Part shown: piece after piece, positions 200-12,009 of the stretch
How the letters are laid out: each line of letters opens with the position of its first letter
How positions within the stretch are numbered: the stretch's first letter is position 1
Assembly: GCA_013416795.1 (NCBI GenBank)
Contig: RQSC01001211.1
Coordinates: 1 to 12,009, forward strand
Reading direction: 5' to 3'
DNA: 12,009 nucleotides
Source of the DNA: Prasinococcaceae sp. CCMP 1430
Lineage: Eukaryota > Plantae > Prasinodermophyta
The notes under the pieces: generated by a model
Databases searched by the model: none
Seen by the model: the letters and a program-made list of their open reading frames with translations, nothing else
What the model was told of the DNA's origin: nothing
Program-made: the position numbers and the translations under genes

Positions 200-400
200 C
201 CCCACATCACATCAAAATGCCTCCGATTCCATCCCACCGTTCGCACAACAATTTGACATTCATTTGCATTTTCTACGAGTCTCCCGTTAGTACTCGAGTC
301 GCTATAACCGCAAAGACTCGTTTGATCACATCAATGTCACTTACCATCTCGAGACGTGAGACATCAAACCCTGCATTAAAGTAGTTTGAATGTAGTTTGA
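200..400. promoter_or_regulatory. AT-rich intergenic island, probable (bidirectional) promoter upstream of UTP14
   Basis: Sharp drop in GC relative to flanks. Contains ACATCACATC (204-213), CATCAAAAT (210-218), ATCAAACCCTGCA (363-375), CATTAAAGTA (374-383) and a direct repeat GTAGTTTGA (381-389, 392-400). Confidence 0.55.
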
Positions 401-3276
401 CGTCGATTGCCCGCGGCGTGAGTTGGGGGTTGCGGCGGCGGCTGAGCCGCCGCCGGCCGGGGCTCTGCGCGATCCTCGGTCCATCGGGTGCCGGCAAGTC
501 GACGCTCCTAGAAGCGGGAGGAGGCGGGCGCGGCAAGGCCGGGCGTGGCGGCGGGCGCGGCAAGGCCGGGCGCTCGGCGCCGCCGCGCTCGGATGTGTTC
601 GAGGCGGACGAGCCCGAGCTGCCTGAGGAGCGCGAGGGCGCCGCGGGCCGCGAGGGGCGGTACGACGAAGTGGACAACTTCCAGTACGAGCTCCCGGAGG
701 ACTTCGAGGACGAAGAGATCACCTCCGAGTCCGACGCTCACGAGGACGGCGACGGCAGCGATGGGGAAGGCGACGGCGACCTGGGCGACTTCTTTGGCGT
801 GGCGGAGGAGGGCGACGAGGGCGACGATGACGACGACGAGGAGGACGGAGAGAGCAGCGGCGAGGAGGAGGAGGAAGAGGAGGAGGAGGAGGACTGCATG
901 ACCTTCGATGGCGACGCGGAGGACGACGGTGCCGACGAGGGGCGGCACGCGTCGATGATCGCCGACGTGCTCGGGCGCGGTGCGGATGCGCGCGGGCGCT
1001 CGAGGCGGCGCGACGCCGACACGGTGACGGCGGGCGCGCGCGAAGGCGAGGCGCACCTGGCGTCGTCGGGCGCAGCGCGCGGCGTCTCGGTGGACGACAT
1101 CGCTGCGGCCGTCGGAGGAGGCAGCGCGGACGCGCGCCGCATGCTGCGGCGCGTCGCCGAGCGCGCGCGCTCCGGAGCGGCCGTCTCGGCTCCGCTGCCG
1201 GCCAACATCGCCGCCAGGCTCGAGCGCAAGGCGGGCTACGAGGCCTCCAAGGCCGAGCTCGCGCAGTGGCAGGACATGGTGCAGCGCAATCGCAAGGCGG
1301 AGCTCGAGGACCTGCGCAAGAAGAGCACTACGGAGGGGAGCTCCACCGCCGCGCTGGGCGCCAAGTTCAGCGCCAAGGAGAGCGGCGTCGAGGCCGACGT
1401 GGACGGCCTCCTCGCCGCCGCGGGCCTCACCGAGGAGCGCGCGGCGGCCGCCGCCGAGGAGCTCGAGCTCAACGAGCTGGCCGTCGACGAGGTTGCCGAC
1501 CGCCAGGCCAAACTCGCGCGCATGCGCAGCCTCATGTTCAGGCACGAGGTTAAGGCGAAGCGCGCCAAGAAGATCAAGAGCCGCGCGTACCACAAGCACC
1601 TCAAGAAGGCCGCTCTCAAGGAGGGCAACATGGCGCTCGATGACGGCGCCGCCGACGGGCTGGTCGGTGACGAGGAGTCCCGACGCGAACTCGCGAAGCG
1701 CCGCGAGTTCGAGCGGTTGGAGGAGCGCCTCACGCTCAAGCACAAGAACACCGGCAAGTGGGCCAAGCAGATGCTCAAGGCGAAGCTCGGGGGCCACAAC
1801 ACGTCCGTGCGCCAGGCGGTCGCAGAGCAGCTGCGCCTCAACAAGGCGCTCACGCGCAAGATGGACTCCATGCGCGACGAGGAGGACTCGGACAGCAGCG
1901 CGGACGAGGGGGAGAGCTCCGACGAGGACGAGGGCGGCAAGGGGCGCAAGGCGTCGGTCAAGGCGCTCGAGGAACTTGTGAACGAGGAGGAGGGCGCCGA
2001 GCTGCCCTCCAAGGGGCTCTTCAGCCTGCCTTTCATGAAGCGTGCCATCGAGAAGCGTCGAGCGGACGCGCAGAAGGAGGCGCGCGACATGCTGGAGGAG
2101 CTCAACGAAATGGAGGCCGAGAGTGAGGACGACGACGAGAGCGAGGACGACGAAGATCGCGCCAAGGCTGGCGGCGGCGACGGTCGCGCTGGTGGCGACG
2201 CCGACGACGAGGACGACGAGGACGACGACGACGACGTCGAGGACGACGACGAGGATGAGAGCGTCCCTGGGGCGGGCGCGCGCATGTCCTTCCGCGGTGC
2301 CGCGCCGGTCGCCAAGGCGGGCAAGGTGGGCAAGAAGCGCTCGGCGCCTGGTGCGCGGGCGCGCGCGGCTGCGGCTGAGGAAGAGGACGAGGAGGTGGTG
2401 TACGATATGGAGGGCGGTGAGGTGGTGCGTGCGGATGCGGATGGTGCCACGGGCGCCAAGCGTGCGCGCGGCGCGCGCGATGCGGACTCTGCCGCGGCCG
2501 CAGCGCGCATTGCAGCTATGGCCAAAGCGGGTGACGGCAATCTCGGCGGGGGACGCGTGGCCTCCGTCATGGGGGCCAAGCCCTCGACTAAGGCGGCGGC
2601 GCCGCCGCTTGAGACGGGCCCGGTCAATGCCGCGGCGATCGCGACGGCAAACGCGGAGGCCTTGGAGGCGGACGATCATGTAGGAGCGGAGGCCAGCGCG
2701 GGCGCGCAAGAAGCAGCGGCCCAGCAGCGCTCGCTTCTGCGCGAGGCCTTCGCCGATGACGACGTGGCCGCCGACTTTGCGCGTGAGAAAGCTGCGCTGC
2801 TGGACGAGGAACTCCCGCCGGGCGCCGAGACGGCCGCTGAGGAGGCCGCGGGTATGCCCGGCTGGGGTTCATGGACTGGCGCCAAGAAGAGCGCGCGGCA
2901 GAAGAAAAAGGAGGCGGAGGCTGCCAAAAAAGCTGCCAAGGCGCGGCGCGAGGCCGAGGCCAAGCGCCGCGATGCGGGAAAGTCGCACGTGATCATCTCC
3001 GAGAAGTACGACAAGAAAGCTGCGACGCTGACCGCGCGGCAGGTGCCCTTCGGCTTCGGCTCGAGGGAGGTGTACGAGGCCTCGCTGCGGCAGCCGCTCG
3101 GCCGCGAGTTCAACTCGGACCGCACCTACCGGGATCTCAATCGCCCCAAGCTGCTCACCACGGCTGGCGCGGTCATCGCAGCGCCCAAGAAACCCACGGC
3201 CACCGGCGGGGGGGCCGGGGGCAGCGGCAGGGCCAAGGGCAGCGCGGGAAAGAGGAAACCTCTTGGGGTTAAATAA
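397..3276 (+). CDS. UTP14: U3 snoRNP / SSU processome protein Utp14; intronless from ~511, true start unresolved
   Basis: Plant-type N-terminal motif RYDEVDNFQYELPEDFEDEEI (658-720); ARLERKAGYEASKAELAQW; core ARMRSLMFRHEVKAKRAKKIKSRAYHK; ERLTLKHKNTGKWAK; C-terminal MPGWGSW...HVIISEKYDKKA...YEASLRQPLGREFN; long acidic tracts. The ORF start at 397 is TTG and the first in-frame ATG is at 898. Confidence 0.93.
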   Translation: MTSIARGVSWGLRRRLSRRRPGLCAILGPSGAGKSTLLEAGGGGRGKAGRGGGRGKAGRSAPPRSDVFEADEPELPEEREGAAGREGRYDEVDNFQYELPEDFEDEEITSESDAHEDGDGSDGEGDGDLGDFFGVAEEGDEGDDDDDEEDGESSGEEEEEEEEEEDCMTFDGDAEDDGADEGRHASMIADVLGRGADARGRSRRRDADTVTAGAREGEAHLASSGAARGVSVDDIAAAVGGGSADARRMLRRVAERARSGAAVSAPLPANIAARLERKAGYEASKAELAQWQDMVQRNRKAELEDLRKKSTTEGSSTAALGAKFSAKESGVEADVDGLLAAAGLTEERAAAAAEELELNELAVDEVADRQAKLARMRSLMFRHEVKAKRAKKIKSRAYHKHLKKAALKEGNMALDDGAADGLVGDEESRRELAKRREFERLEERLTLKHKNTGKWAKQMLKAKLGGHNTSVRQAVAEQLRLNKALTRKMDSMRDEEDSDSSADEGESSDEDEGGKGRKASVKALEELVNEEEGAELPSKGLFSLPFMKRAIEKRRADAQKEARDMLEELNEMEAESEDDDESEDDEDRAKAGGGDGRAGGDADDEDDEDDDDDVEDDDEDESVPGAGARMSFRGAAPVAKAGKVGKKRSAPGARARAAAAEEEDEEVVYDMEGGEVVRADADGATGAKRARGARDADSAAAAARIAAMAKAGDGNLGGGRVASVMGAKPSTKAAAPPLETGPVNAAAIATANAEALEADDHVGAEASAGAQEAAAQQRSLLREAFADDDVAADFAREKAALLDEELPPGAETAAEEAAGMPGWGSWTGAKKSARQKKKEAEAAKKAAKARREAEAKRRDAGKSHVIISEKYDKKAATLTARQVPFGFGSREVYEASLRQPLGREFNSDRTYRDLNRPKLLTTAGAVIAAPKKPTATGGGAGGSGRAKGSAGKRKPLGVK
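406..510 (+). other. ABCG-transporter-like nucleotide-binding-domain fragment (Walker A) in frame with UTP14
   Basis: IARGVS...RPGLCAILGPSGAGKSTLL resembles the ABCG NBD start (ILxGVSG..RPGELxAILGPSGAGKSTLL). Walker A GPSGAGKS is at 478-501. No Q-loop, signature motif or Walker B follows. Confidence 0.7.
523..572 (+). repeat. Two identical 23-nt copies (GGCGGGCGCGGCAAGGCCGGGCG, 523-545 and 550-572; 27-nt period) encoding a GGRGKAGR repeat
   Basis: Exact direct repeat read from the sequence; RG-rich N-terminal tail typical of nucleolar proteins. Confidence 0.9.
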
Positions 3277-5367: not shown

Positions 5368-5869
5368 CCTGGATGCGCCGCAGCTCCGCAGGGCACGTAG
5401 GGGAGTGAAGGGCGCTGGTTGACGGGGCAGATGCCGGCAGCACGCGCGGCGGAGGAGCGGACGACGCCGTCCGTCCCTCCCCTCCTGCCTGAGCGCGCCG
5501 CCTTGCCGGCGCCGCGGCGTGCCCGCGCCCGCGCCGGGCGAGGGGCGAATGTGAGACGGGGCGAGGCGCGCGCGGGCGCCGCGCGCGCGTTTGCGGCGGG
5601 AAGTCGGCGCCGGCGCCGATTTCCGAATTGGAAATCGGTGCGCGCATTGAGGCGGGCGCGCGCGAGGAGGTGGGAGGGCGGGCCCGCAGGGCGAGACGCT
5701 CGCACACCAGCCTGGAGAGCAAGGCAAGGGGAAGGCGCGGGCGGAGCCTTGCTGCGCGCCGCGCTCGCTGCGTGTCAGCTCTGGCGCCGCGCGCGCCCGC
5801 ACTGTGCGTTTCCGCGCCCGCCAGAATGACTGCACGCGGCTGTGGACCGACACCCCTCTTCGTTTACCG

Positions 5870-5945
5870 CTCCCCCAAATTGATTTTAAAACATATCAAC
5901 AAACATTAAAGTACGTAAATAGAATGCATGGTACTCCGTTTTCAT
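5870..5945. promoter_or_regulatory. AT-rich island, probable promoter region of the sulfatase
   Basis: AT-rich stretch upstream of the minus-strand sulfatase; contains CATTAAAGTA (5904-5913), identical to 374-383. Confidence 0.4.
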
Positions 5946-6274
5946 CAAGAGTTGTGGCGGGAGAGCTGGCCACGCGCGCGCGCGTTCCCCCGGCGCGCGC
6001 GCGCGCAGAATCTGCAGCACCTGCAGCCGCGGCGGCAGCCACTCGCGCGCGCCGCCGCAGCGAGGCGGCCGCACGCTTGCGCGACCGACGGGCCCCGCCG
6101 CCCGAGCTGGCGACTCTCCCAATGGCGAGCGACGCGAGCGGCCCTTCAGCGGGCCGCCCGCGCGCGCGCGCCGAGTGGTGCCCACCCGCAGCACCGAGCG
6201 ATCGCTGCAGCGCCGCAGCGCCGCTGCGCACGAAAATCGTGCAGAGGCGCGGGCGCGCCGCGCGGAAGCGAGCG

Positions 6275-6365
6275 CATTATCAAACCCTGCACCTCAAGTG
6301 CCATCAAAATACATCACATCTCAACACAATTGTTTAGGGTCAAACTTTTCAACGAGTGTTTGATG
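6275..6365. promoter_or_regulatory. AT-rich island, probable promoter of the 6622..7534 gene
   Basis: Contains ATCAAACCCTGCA (6279-6291), CATCAAAAT (6302-6310), ACATCACATC (6311-6320), one TTTAGGG (6333-6339) and GTTTGATG (6358-6365), which is inverted relative to CATCAAA. Confidence 0.45.
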
Positions 6366-6621
6366 GGGGTGTTGACCGAGCGCGCGCCTCCTCCAGCGCG
6401 CGCCCGTACAAAAGCCGGATCAAATCATCGACAAGTCTCCTCCTTGGTTGGGGTGCTCGGACGACGTCGCCGGTCGCGGCGGATGAAACCCGAACTGCGC
6501 GCTTGCGTTTTTTGGGGGGCTCTGCCTGCGGGAGGGGCAGCGAGGGAGCGAGAGCGAGGACTGGCGCGGGCGCGCGGCGGCGGCCACACGGCGCGCGCAG
6601 CGCACCAGCACGCCTTCGACC

Positions 6622-7534
6622 ATGGTGCTTCCTTCGTTCGCCGCCGCCGCCGCCGCCGCTGCGCCCGCCGGAAACAGCGCGCGCAAGGCCGCCATGGACA
6701 GCATCTCGTCCGTGCGCACGTATGCGTCGCTCGCCGTGCTCAGCATTCCGTGGATCGGCAGCTACGTCAAGATGGCCCAGCACCGCAACGCCATCCGCTC
6801 GGGCAAGGCGCACCACTAGTGCGCGCGGTCGCATGGCAGGACGGCGGCCTGTCGCCGCCACCGCGCACGGAGGGGCGCGCGCACCCGCGCACCGCGCCGT
6901 CCCCCCTCCCCGCCCGGCGCCTAGCCAGGGTGGGGGTGGGGCGGGGTGTGTGGGGCGCGAGGGACCGCGCGAGGGAGGGGTGTGTGCGGGGGTGAGCGGG
7001 TGGGTGGTGGGTGACGCGCGACCCTGGCGCGCCGGGGTAGCTGCTGGGCGCCTGCTGTGGCCACGCACGCGCTGAGGACCCCGCGCACGCACTACACACT
7101 TGCTCGCGATGGTGTCCGAGAGCCTGATCGCCGATGTGGCGATACGCATGTACATTGTCGTTATGTTCCTGTACGCGCTGCGGATGGCGTGGCGTCAGTG
7201 GCGCGCCTCGGCACGCCAGCGGCGAGAGGCTGCGGAGTTGCACCGCCTGGCGAATGCGCCCCTCGCCCCGTTGGACATGCGCGAGCGCTTAGGCGTCCTG
7301 CAGCCGGACGGTAGCATGGGCTTTGCGGTCATTGACATCCCGGGGGCGAACGAGGCCGAGGCCGATGCTGTCGCGCGCTTTGAGAAGGAGGCCGCCATTC
7401 GCGAGGCGCTGCGGCGGCGCCTGGCGGGCGTTGCGCCTCCTAGCGAGGAGACGCGCGATCTGGAAGACCTCGTTCGCGAGCTTCGGCAACAGACCGGCCA
7501 AGAGCTGTCCGGCACGCGGCAGCGGGAGTCGTGA
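6622..7534 (+). CDS. Hypothetical membrane protein; tentative join(6622..6818,7123..7534), 202 aa
   Basis: Two ORF pieces that both read as plausible protein, each with a hydrophobic segment (YASLAVLSIPWIGSYV; IADVAIRMYIVVMFLYAL), then a charged helical tail. The exon-1 TAG overlaps a GTGCGC donor at 6819. The only in-phase AG reaching the second frame is a GAG acceptor ending at 7122. No family recognised. Confidence 0.55.
6819..7122 (+). other. Tentative intron (304 nt), G-rich, 3' boundary uncertain
   Basis: GTGCGC donor matches the other introns; non-coding G/C-run composition; branch-like GCTGAG (A at 7075); weak GAG acceptor. Confidence 0.45.
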
Positions 7535-7732
7535 GCGCAGTTTTGTGTACCTTCCTGTAAAACAACCAATCAACTAAAGACTTCTATCCGGTCTTTCACG
7601 CCGCGGCGCCCAAGCTCGCCTTGCCAAGACGGCGGGTTGGAGAGATGCAGCCGGTTCCCTCGTACCTCGAGGCCCCTTCGCACGCTTGCGGGTTCAGCTG
7701 CGCACCGCTGACGGTTGCGTCGCCCAAGCGCC

Positions 7733-9028: not shown

Positions 9029-9104
9029 NNNNNNNNNNNNNNNNNNNNNNNNNNNNNNNNNNNNNNNNNNNNNNNNNNNNNNNNNNNNNNNNNNNNNNNN
9101 NNNN
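9029..9104. other. Assembly gap (76 N)
   Basis: Run of N in the sequence; the true length may differ. Confidence 1.
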
Positions 9105-9259: not shown

Positions 9260-9285
9260 AACCCTAGCCCTAGCCCTAGCCCTAG
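9260..9285 (+). repeat. AA(CCCTAG)4 telo-box/telomere-variant tandem array in the divergent promoter between the HugZ-like gene and PRP18
   Basis: Four perfect CCCTAG units at 9262-9285 preceded by AA (AACCCTAG). Confidence 0.85.
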
Positions 9286-9611
9286 CGATCACACCGGGGT
9301 AAAATCGCGCGGGATGCCACAACGATGATGCTCCATTCGACTGTTGGGGCGGGCTTTTCGGGGCTCGTCCGGGCGGATCGCAGGTCAATATGCATCGCTC
9401 GTAAAACGCAGAAAGTGTTTTCGTGGGGGAACGCGCCGCGGTGCCGCGGGCCCACAGCGCGCGCGCCGCGCGGCGCGCCCACGGCGGGGGCGGCGGGGGC
9501 GGCGGCGGCGAGGGCCAGCGCGCGGGCGGCAAGGCGGGCGAGGGAGGCAGCGCGGGGGGTGTCTCGTCGGCTGGGTCGAAGCAGAGCGAGAGCGCCCGCG
9601 CCGTGGCCGCC

Positions 9612-10718
9612 ATGACCCAGGCGCAGGTGTTCGCGAAGTTGCGCGCGCTCGCCGAGCCGGTGACGTACTTCGGCGAGGTCGACCAGGATCGACGAGAGCG
9701 CCTCGCCAAGAAGCTCGAGGAGCGCGCCGAGGCGCTGGCCGCGGACGAGGAGGAGGGCGTGAAGCGCAACGTGCGCGACGACGCCTTCAAACAGGACGTC
9801 AAGCGCATGGCGGAGGAGCGCGAGGCGCGCAAGCGCCAGCTCGCCGCAGAGGCAGCGACGGGCATCACGAGCAAGGCGCCCGATGGCGGCGGAGGAGGCG
9901 CGGCCGACGGCGCCAAGCAGGCCGCGGGTGCCGCGGGCGCCGCGGAGGGTGCCGGGAGGGAAGCCGGCGGCGGCGTCGACGGCGATTTCGCTGCGCGCGT
10001 CGCAGAGGCGGCGCGCATCGCCAAGAAGCTGAAGGAGGAGGCGGACACCAACCTCGAGGAGGACGATCGCGCGGTGGCCTACATGCGGCGGCTCCTGCAA
10101 GAGTGGGGCACTGAGCTCGCCGAGCAGGGCACGGAGGCGCTCATGACCTCCTTCGAGGGCATTCAGAGCGTGGCGACGCACCGCCAGACCGAGGATTTCA
10201 TCAAGCCGCTCTTCGAGCGCCTCGAACAGCGCACGCTGGACCCGCTCATGCGCTGGAACATCCTGATGATCATCCGGCTGATGCGCGAGCGCGAGTACCT
10301 CAAGGCGAGCGACAAGTACGTGCAGATCTGCATCGGCAACGCGCCGTGGCCCATCGGCGTGACCTCGGTGGGCATCCACGCGCGCTCGGGCCGCGAGCGC
10401 ATCTCAGAGACCAACAAGAACTTCAAGGCGCACGTCATGACCGATGAGACCACTCGCAAGTTCCTGGTGTGCCTCAAGCGCCTGCTCACCTTCGCGCAGC
10501 GTCGCTACCCGGCCGACCCCTCCAAGTGCCTCGAGTTCAACTCGCTGGTCAACGGCTCCGACCTGAAGGCGCTCACGGGCCGCGACATCGAGGCGGAGAC
10601 CGAACACCTGCGGAGCGAGACCGACTTTCGCGCGCACTCGGTCAAGCACTGGGTCAACGAGCCGCCGCCGCCGCCCGGCCAGGGCAAGGGCCGCCTGCTC
10701 AACAAGCCCAACTTCTGA
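9612..10718 (+). CDS. PRP18: Pre-mRNA splicing factor Prp18 (second-step factor), 368 aa from ATG 9612
   Basis: N-terminal PRP4-like/SFM motif (VFAKLRALAEPVTYFGEVDQDRRERL); Prp18 domain with conserved loop IGNAPWPIGVTSVGIHARSGRERI, AHVMTDETTRKFL..LKRLLTFAQRRYPADPSK, and plant-type tail EFNSLVNGSDL. The frame is open upstream to 9405 without an ATG, so a spliced upstream exon is possible. Confidence 0.93.
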   Translation: MTQAQVFAKLRALAEPVTYFGEVDQDRRERLAKKLEERAEALAADEEEGVKRNVRDDAFKQDVKRMAEEREARKRQLAAEAATGITSKAPDGGGGGAADGAKQAAGAAGAAEGAGREAGGGVDGDFAARVAEAARIAKKLKEEADTNLEEDDRAVAYMRRLLQEWGTELAEQGTEALMTSFEGIQSVATHRQTEDFIKPLFERLEQRTLDPLMRWNILMIIRLMREREYLKASDKYVQICIGNAPWPIGVTSVGIHARSGRERISETNKNFKAHVMTDETTRKFLVCLKRLLTFAQRRYPADPSKCLEFNSLVNGSDLKALTGRDIEAETEHLRSETDFRAHSVKHWVNEPPPPPGQGKGRLLNKPNF

Positions 10719-10896: not shown

Positions 10897-12009
10897 TTAC
10901 TTCGCGGCGGTCTTGCCGGACTCGATCATGGCCTCGTCCTTGGCCTTCTCCTTCTCGGCCTGCGTAAGCAGCCTGCCCTTCGCCACGATCTCCTTCCTCT
11001 CCGCGAAGCGATCCACCAGGAAGTCGGCGTGCTCGCGCATGATGAGTGTGAACTGCGCGGGCGCGCGTGGGCGCAAAGGGGGGTGGCGCGGGTCAGCACG
11101 CGCGGCGGGGATGCGTCCAGGGCGCGCGCCCGCGAGTGCGCCACATGCGCGCGCGCGCGCCGCCTCCGCCGCGCCGCACCTTGTAGTGCTCCTCCATGAC
11201 GTCGATGACGCGCTCGCGGAAGGACGAGTCCTTCATGCGCCCGCCATCCTCGTCGCTCTCGAATTCCTTCCAGCCCTTGGCGACGCTCGACTGGTTCGTC
11301 GTGCAGGGCATGCGCATCCACCTCGCGAGCTTTCGGAGCTCGTTGACGGCGTTGAAGGACTGCGAGCCGCCGTTCACCTGCAGCACCGCGCACGTGCGGC
11401 CCTGCGAGGGTCGCACGCTGCCGCTGGTGAGGGGGATCCAGTCGATCTGGTTCTTGAACACGCCGGTGATCGTGCCGTGCATCTCCGGCGACACCCACAC
11501 GTGGCCCTCGGACCAGAGCGACAGGCTTCGCAGCTCCTGCACCTTGGGATGGTCCTCGAGCGCCGGGTCGCGCACGGGCAGGCCGCTGGGATTGAAGACG
11601 CGCACGTCGGCGCCCATTGCCTCGAGCAGCCGCGCGCACTCGTACGCCAGCAGCTTAGAGAAGGAGCGCTCCCGCAGCGAGCCGTAGAGCACCAGCAGGC
11701 GCGGCTTGTGCGTCTTGGTCGCGCCGGGCACAGCGAAGTCCCGCGCCGCGCTCAGGTCGGTGCCGTATGCGCCATCGGCGTCGAAGGCGACGCGCGCCAC
11801 CCAGTCGTCGCCCGGGCCTGATGTGTCCCGGGTGACGCGGATGAGAGGGGCAATGGTGCAGTTGACGGCGGGGATGGCGTAGCCGTTGTCGCGGGCGTGC
11901 TTGAGCACGGCCATCGAGTCCTTGCCCGACACCACGCCCGGCTTGACGATGTCCGCCAGCTTCTGCGTCGTGGCGGCCTCGGCGCGCGCGGCCGCGCGGC
12001 GCGCGGCGC
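10897..12009 (-). CDS. arsH: ArsH NADPH-dependent FMN reductase / organoarsenical oxidase with a chimeric N-terminus; join(<12007..11180,11052..10897), 5' partial
   Basis: [28 protein letters not shown]; [26 protein letters not shown]; [48 protein letters not shown]...NQSSVAK; after splicing YK|[21 protein letters not shown]. These are all ArsH-specific motifs. Confidence 0.93.
11053..11179 (-). other. Spliceosomal intron of arsH (127 nt)
   Basis: GTGCGG donor, GCTGAC branch point (A at 11093), CGCAG acceptor, phase 0; restores the conserved ArsH C-terminal helix. Confidence 0.9.
11855..11962 (-). other. N-terminal fragment of class II (type A) fructose-bisphosphate aldolase fused in frame to ArsH
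   Basis: [36 protein letters not shown] versus E. coli FbaA KIFDFVKPGVITGDDVQKVFQVAKENNFALPAVNCV. Similarity ends abruptly after VNCT. Confidence 0.85.

Follow-up and report, generated by a model that had tools for sequence, protein, structure and literature searches.

The 5' end of UTP14, an essential ribosome-assembly gene, was analysed in a stretch of 12,009 nucleotides (nt) from Prasinococcaceae sp. CCMP 1430 (contig RQSC01001211.1, assembly GCA_013416795.1; hereafter the window). The gene is preceded, in its own reading frame, by a 35-codon scrap of P-loop coding sequence, and no in-frame ATG is co-linear with the conserved beginning of the protein. One complete splice model exists, in which the scrap would be non-coding and would lie within a first intron (356-511) behind a 22-nt mini-exon that carries the ATG. 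This is the reading that we tentatively favour, at somewhat below even confidence. The features on which the argument rests are the following, in order of position.

334-355, plus strand: candidate ATG mini-exon of 22 nt, seven codons (M-S-L-T-I-S-R) and one base
356-511, plus strand: predicted first intron of 156 nt, GTGAGA...CTCCTAG
382-384, plus strand: TAG that closes the UTP14 frame upstream of the long open reading frame (ORF)
390-395, plus strand: ATG followed immediately by TAG, in a frame other than that of the ORF
397-402, plus strand: TTGACG, the sole branch-like motif on the plus strand of 1-700, with five of the six bases of CTGACG
406-510, plus strand: 35 codons of P-loop coding sequence (ABC-like, Walker A), sharing the UTP14 frame
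433-455: perfect 11-bp palindrome with a 1-nt loop (433-443 with 445-455), reading R-R-R-L-S-R-R-R
512-3276, plus strand: main UTP14 exon, with its stop codon at 3274-3276 and the Pfam Utp14 domain inside
520-572, plus strand: in-frame 27-nt tandem duplication, 96% identical, in the G/R/K-rich N-terminal head
592-720, plus strand: conserved N-terminal Utp14 motifs (DVFEADE and RYD.VDNFQYELP.DFEDEEI blocks), translated
898-900, plus strand: first ATG in the ORF frame within the long ORF, an unlikely start, preceded by out-of-frame ATGs at 593, 761 and 827

The UTP14 reading frame and the scrap at its start

UTP14 is otherwise an ordinary, intact gene. The ORF at 397-3276 on the plus strand matches the Utp14 family (Pfam PF04615) with E=5.5e-142 over a full-length domain (ORF residues 201-931, profile positions 14-729 of 731), and its codons have a GC content of 0.87 at third positions (GC3) versus 0.51 at second positions (GC2). 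It shares 99% identity with the EukProt protein PRCOL_00002788-RA of Prasinoderma coloniale, the species to which the window is assigned. Eight ATGs are found in 55-900 (92, 217, 334, 390, 593, 761, 827 and 898), and only those at 217, 334 and 898 are in the ORF frame. From 385 to 897 there are zero in-frame ATGs, and thus no AUG start contiguous with the basic head of the protein. Given the TAG at 382 and no ATG in frame before 898, a co-linear AUG start is therefore impossible, and initiation can be explained only by splicing, by a non-AUG codon or by a true sequence unlike the one assembled. The original prediction, made from the sequence alone, had described this arrangement (TAG 382-384, ATG 390 followed by TAG, no ATG until 898, and conserved motifs at 592 and 658-720), and all its coordinates hold. 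It had also called the RG-rich part that follows the scrap a tail of Utp14, whereas that part is the N-terminal head.

The stretch between the scrap and ATG 898 has the marks of coding sequence. DVFEADE begins at 592, the block RYDEVDNFQYELPEDFEDEEI occupies 658-720, and in translation the two present the acidic N-terminal motif of the family (DV[YF]E...RYD.V...YELP.DFEDEEI). The DV[YF]E ... DFEDEEI block occurs in 28 loci of other eukaryotes, each time preceded at a short distance by an ATG and a basic stretch. The UTP14 of a wild relative, 71% identical, is found on a Tara Oceans scaffold (L001), and comparison of nt 586-735 with it gives 23 identical codons, 13 with synonymous differences only and 11 that change the amino acid, so that synonymous changes make up 13 of the 24 differing codons. 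By this comparison the block 586-735 is judged to be under purifying selection at the protein level. Because the differences are rich in synonymous changes and the motifs are conserved in 28 loci, the stretch upstream of ATG 898 (586-897) is concluded to be translated. An N-terminally truncated Utp14 from ATG 898, one of the explanations first offered, is accordingly highly improbable. No earlier ATG of the ORF is in frame, and the Pfam domain begins after 898, but truncation would leave the selected block outside the protein, and scanning ribosomes would first meet three ATGs of another frame (593, 761 and 827) and be caught there. The in-frame 27-nt duplication at 520-572 also suits a coding region.

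Once its first intron is removed, the protein of the relative begins M-A-R-L-R-K-G-G-K-G-K-G, and its start aligns at about nt 511-514, at the end of the scrap. The scrap therefore occupies the position where a start codon is expected, and the original proposal of a foreign, ABC-like P-loop fragment at the 5' end of UTP14 is borne out at exactly this point. In the UTP14 of the relative (L001, 8875-9366), codon 57 is followed by a phase-1 intron of 319 nt that P. coloniale lacks, and the start of the gene, a possible intron site in P. coloniale, is uninterrupted. Since intron positions differ between the two in the 5' part of the gene, intron turnover is real here. Wild copies of the locus and proteins derived from its transcripts were also sought. 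A metagenome scan for wild copies of the UTP14 locus returned only distant relatives among the matches listed, and no protein of 165-525 amino acids matching the UTP14 N-terminus was found. Exact look-ups of PRCOL_00002788-RA, of the Prp18 ORF and of the 792- and 959-amino-acid Utp14 ORFs gave no record, and these searches yielded no protein of transcript origin. The check for a second, normal UTP14 gene found none in the protein collection searched, which is weak evidence.

Codons 406-510 read I-A-R-G-V-S ... G-P-S-G-A-G-K-S-T-L-L, that is, the strand preceding Walker A and Walker A itself. A 39-residue piece matches ABC_tran (E=3.2e-4) and AAA_29 (E=1.1e-4) in Pfam, both under the gathering score; in the ABC ATPase domain (PF00005) the Walker A is recovered with 21.8 bits against a cutoff of 25, over profile positions 13-28 of 137 only. 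A phmmer search of the scrap against 1.84 billion representative proteins gave eight matches with E<=1e-3, the best at 1.3e-5. These matches agree with the Walker A reading given earlier and indicate that the scrap is a real P-loop fragment, beyond chance. The more specific label of ABCG-type stands in part: three of the long best matches are ABCG-type proteins (ABC_tran followed by ABC2_membrane), but the resemblance is weakly specific, as further matches include one guanylate-kinase repeat protein and one bacterial-type ABC ATPase, and the PDB matches include EF3 and EttA as well as ABCG2. Pfam shows no ABC2_membrane domain after the nucleotide-binding part, and the signature motif, Walker B and H-loop are all absent from the window, the frame turning to Utp14 at about 511. 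An origin from an ABC-like Walker A region, possibly of ABCG type, is suggested by these similarities. The scrap is non-functional; it is neither a P-loop domain of Utp14 nor a new protein domain.

Searches for the donor returned no parent gene. A word search of proteins of 527-1678 amino acids gave generic ABC matches only, and exhaustive phmmer found no close parent, the best matches to the scrap having 55-74% identity over 17-29 residues; the intact ABCG parent whose search had been advised is thus missing from the protein collections searched. A degenerate pattern of 17 codons of the scrap had no match in 185,579 prokaryotic genomes (GTDB), and a 13-codon pattern matched 33 bacterial ABC exporters, several of them from Sphingomonadaceae, with DNA identity to the scrap of about 80% over 44 nt and no further extension. 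A bacterial donor may be considered, and these pattern scans neither support nor contradict it. No second copy of the scrap is present in the window or in L001.

The region of the scrap contains several short repeats. The palindrome at 433-455 breaks the ABC-like alignment as a seven-codon insertion, an 11-nt tandem duplication (378-388 and 389-399) contains the ATG at 390, and an 8-nt copy of the left flank is present at the scrap junction.

A candidate first intron and competing explanations

All combinations of ATG, GT and AG that give an open frame into DVFEADE were enumerated. The only complete model with a donor of the genus type (GTGAG or GTGCG) and a pyrimidine-rich YAG acceptor starts at ATG 334 (or 217) and joins the donor at 356 to the acceptor at 511. 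The donor, GTGAGA, has the form GT[GA][AC]G, and the YAG acceptor restores an open frame from the ATG; with seven codons and one base in the mini-exon, the intron that follows would therefore be of phase 1. The candidate intron encloses the in-frame TAG at 382, the ATG-TAG pair and the entire P-loop scrap. In composition-preserving shuffles of 200-511 such a model arises in 5% of cases with a pyrimidine-rich acceptor and in 10% with any YAG. The next AGs downstream (514, 520 and 523) are in the same phase as AG 511. The predicted RNA fold of 356-511 has an energy of -72.3 kcal/mol (z=-2.5), equalled in none of 200 shuffles, and contains a stem (399-408 with 497-507) that encloses the scrap and buries the AGs at 422, 446 and 498, with AG 511 single-stranded. 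A search of 150-700 against Rfam gave no match.

The proposed course of events is as follows. The scrap probably arrived as filler DNA in the repair of a break. It may have inserted into a short older intron, separating a TTGACG from the 3' splice site that had been close to it. In the present gene the phase-1 intron 356-511 would be removed from the mRNA, scrap included, and translation would run from ATG 334 in the mini-exon and continue at 512 into the G/R/K-rich Utp14 head. An unseen spliced 5' exon had been among the options first listed, and it is the one that fits best, as the arrangement 334-355/356/511 gives a complete in-frame ORF, with the splicing itself a prediction. For a start at TTG 397, another of those options, nothing was found in favour.

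The intron signals of Prasinoderma were taken from six comparison introns of the window and L001; distances were measured for five (three from the window, two from L001), and the second L001 intron was read by eye. They include the following.

4649-4546 and 4374-4242, minus strand: two introns of the sulfatase gene
7531-7728, plus strand: one intron
L001, 9047-9365 and one ending at about 11197: introns on the scaffold of the wild relative

The comparison introns are 104-319 nt long and have GTG[AC]G donors. In all six a CTGACG branch site is followed, after 17-69 nt, by the first downstream AG, which is the one used. Intron signals in Prasinoderma thus seem unusually strict, in a small sample.

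Several observations weigh against the intron at 356-511. It lacks the CTGACG branch site, and the plus strand of 1-700 contains neither CTGAC nor CTAAC, leaving any intron there without a canonical branch site. The related TTGACG at 397-402 sits 111 nt before AG 511, with the AGs at 422, 446 and 498 intervening. The mini-exon sits in AT-rich, non-coding-looking sequence, and its leader, S-L-T-I-S-R-Q, does not resemble the N-termini of other Utp14 proteins, which are basic. A better donor, GTGAGT, is found at 418 inside the candidate intron, and its product would be unproductive; paired with the acceptor at 511 it is in phase with ATG 390, yet a TAG follows that ATG directly. UTP14 transcription might start near 400, because of the symmetry with the neighbouring gene and its GC-rich 5' untranslated region (5'UTR, 55-200), and ATG 334 would then be excluded from the mRNA. 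Finally, the public gene model does not have the 334-355/356-511 structure. Two-intron models that use the donor at 418 were also read through and rejected, as every one reaches a stop codon.

The branch-site rule of the genus is obeyed if the scrap is instead translated as an N-terminal extension of Utp14, in the variant where a micro-intron of 42 nt (381-422) takes out TAG 382 and brings ATG 334 into the ORF frame: TTGACG is then followed by its first AG at 422. The other variant is a non-AUG start, such as GTG 418, with the hairpin at 433-455 lying 12 nt downstream; a hairpin shortly downstream of a weak start codon is said to favour initiation, as Kozak reportedly found in 1990. The scrap is indeed open and in frame, with a GC3 of about 82%, and its 21-nt palindromic insertion preserves the frame. 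On the other hand, only in-frame scraps would have been noticed, which is a selection bias, and no ATPase fold can form from a single Walker A strand. The GTAGTT donor of the micro-intron is weak, its GAG acceptor is poor, and 42 nt is far below the 104-319 nt of the comparison introns. Non-AUG starts are rare in housekeeping genes, and other Utp14 proteins open directly with a basic stretch. Translation of the scrap, by either route, is therefore considered quite improbable.

The main competing explanation is that the sequence itself is at fault: an assembly or polishing error, or an insertion private to the culture, would have placed the scrap after ATG 390, and the true genome would lack it and have a normal start contiguous with the G/R-rich head. 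By our own sequence arithmetic, deletion of 393-510 joins ATG 390 in frame to GAA 511, and the joined N-terminus (M-E-A-G-G-G-G-R-G-K) resembles those of other species. The composition switches from AT to GC right at ATG 390. As assembled, moreover, an essential gene is left without a co-linear start codon, and the public annotation of this species' genome reached only a far-fetched MVRQ start that is not encoded in 1-603. The lack of a canonical branch site for introns on the plus strand of 1-700 points in the same direction. Against such a fault, a complete splice model exists, with a chance probability of about 5-10%, and the junction, with its 8-nt copy of left-flank sequence, looks more like templated break repair than an assembler error. 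The scrap also copies no protein in the collections searched and no GTDB genome matching the codon patterns, so that a simple mix-up, whether with an annotated gene of P. coloniale or with a sampled bacterium, is not shown. Overall, a faulty or culture-private sequence is considered unlikely, while still carrying appreciable weight, and the spliced first intron is retained as the preferred reading.

The public gene model, PRCOL_00002788-RA, offers yet another beginning for the protein. It starts with M-V-R-Q, joined at 603|604, and an MVRQ exon is absent from 1-603 of the window, whether contiguous or split in two. Further downstream it omits 79 in-frame residues of an acidic block (nt 2083-2319, plus strand) that L001 retains, and 2083-2319 is probably a spurious predicted intron. 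Because it cuts the DV[FY]E motif and skips 79 conserved residues, the public model is unreliable and no guide to the true start; at its 5' end it is wrong whatever the status of the scrap. The real first exon could still lie outside the window, either as in the public model or as another upstream exon joined at 511. In favour of this, the public model begins with MVRQ followed by ADEPE, and that exon is not buildable from 1-603 with two exons or fewer. However, the public junction cuts through the conserved motif, the intron would have to span the start and promoter of a divergent neighbouring gene, and the acceptor is a GAG without a branch site. A first exon outside the window is, on balance, very unlikely.

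Surroundings of UTP14 in the window

The window has about 70% GC, with AT-rich spacers, in agreement with the published figures for the P. coloniale genome (69.8% GC, GC3 85.7% and intron GC 73.5%; PMC7455551, PMC11884799). The spacer in front of UTP14 is the following.

200-400, no strand: AT-rich spacer (38-46% GC) between the minus-strand neighbour and UTP14, probably a shared promoter region

The divergent neighbour has its ATG at 54-52 on the minus strand, and its 5'UTR (55-200) is GC-rich and without coding periodicity. Further AT-rich spacers are found at 5831-5970, 6261-6390 and 7521-7610. The 10-mer ATCACATCAA (206-215 and 325-334) stands directly upstream of both ATG 217 and ATG 334, the 13-mer ATCAAACCCTGCA is common to two AT-rich spacers, at 363 and 6279 (361-375; 6279-6291), and ACATCAA occurs three times against 0.34 expected. 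ATCACATCAA, ATCAAACCCTGCA and ACATCAA may be core-promoter or transcription-start motifs. A tandem duplication of the spacer (200-322 versus 323-445) was considered and set aside as unconvincing, with a score of 27 against a shuffle mean of 17.8 (standard deviation 3.1, maximum 30). On the minus strand, 344-273 resembles a textbook intron of 72 nt (GTAAGT at 344, CTAAC at 290, AG at 273), which could be a 5'UTR intron of the neighbour or a product of chance in AT-rich DNA.

Elsewhere in the window, the Prp18 gene (9390-9614, plus strand) has an in-frame ATG at 9390, a stop at 9402, an open GC-rich frame and the next in-frame ATG at 9612, a leader layout that resembles that of UTP14. An assembly gap of 76 N (9029-9104) lies inside a minus-strand ORF, with a (CCCTAG)x4 microsatellite (9262-9285) just downstream.

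A second in-frame 5' scrap is found in the window, on the minus strand at 11849-11968, and corresponds to residues 3-38 of a class II fructose-bisphosphate aldolase (PDB match, E=4.3e-7). The open frame continues from it into an ArsH-like NADPH-dependent FMN reductase (11096-12007, minus strand; Pfam FMN_red, E=1.3e-28). An in-frame ATG is present in the aldolase scrap and none in the reductase part, and a pyrimidine-rich CAG acceptor-like site follows near 11818. Two 5' scraps in 12 kb are compatible either with a break-repair process at gene 5' ends or with a systematic assembly fault. In P. coloniale, short coding scraps of its own, plastid or bacterial origin might be deposited repeatedly at the very 5' ends of genes, some of them surviving by being spliced out; the second scrap points in this direction, but the idea is improbable. 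If it were true, intron 1 of UTP14 would be an intron caught being born or remodelled from DNA captured in the space that separates branch site and 3' splice site.

UTP14 compared with known systems

The case matters under either of its two leading explanations. UTP14 is essential, yet as assembled it lacks a usable co-linear start codon in the reference genome, which comes from the sole member of the phylum Prasinodermophyta to have been sequenced. If the scrap is real and spliced out, it would be a clean natural case of captured DNA turned into intron sequence at the start of a gene; if it is an assembly fault, foreign scraps at the 5' ends of genes in the reference would mislead annotation.

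Capture of filler DNA at double-strand breaks is known from insertions of the nuclear mitochondrial and nuclear plastid DNA type (NUMT/NUPT) in yeast and plants. UTP14 is similar in having about 100 nt of unrelated coding DNA in its non-coding 5' region, and its flank copy (378-388 and 389-399) and internal palindrome are like those of templated repair. What differs is the location of the scrap, at the start codon of a gene that is essential, and the outcome of the searches, which returned no identifiable donor.

Introns are also gained by DNA insertion, some examples being the introner elements of Micromonas and Aureococcus and the break-repair intron gain of Daphnia. The likeness lies in a lineage-specific 5' intron candidate that is mostly inserted DNA, with intron positions that differ from those of L001. 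Unlike introner elements, the UTP14 scrap has no second copy in the window or in L001, and its intron is a predicted one.

With regard to its protein-coding content, the scrap shares with the nucleotide-binding domain of ABCG proteins a Walker A with typical flanks (R-P-G-L-x-A-I-L-G-P-S-G-A-G-K-S-T-L-L), but it is 35 codons long and is without a Q-loop, signature motif, Walker B, H-loop or membrane domain. With regard to gene structure, a short first exon with the ATG and an early intron are common in intron-poor genomes, and the UTP14 model, with a 22-nt coding exon, a phase-1 intron and one long exon, resembles such genes; it differs from them in its non-consensus branch site, at an unusually great distance from the 3' splice site.

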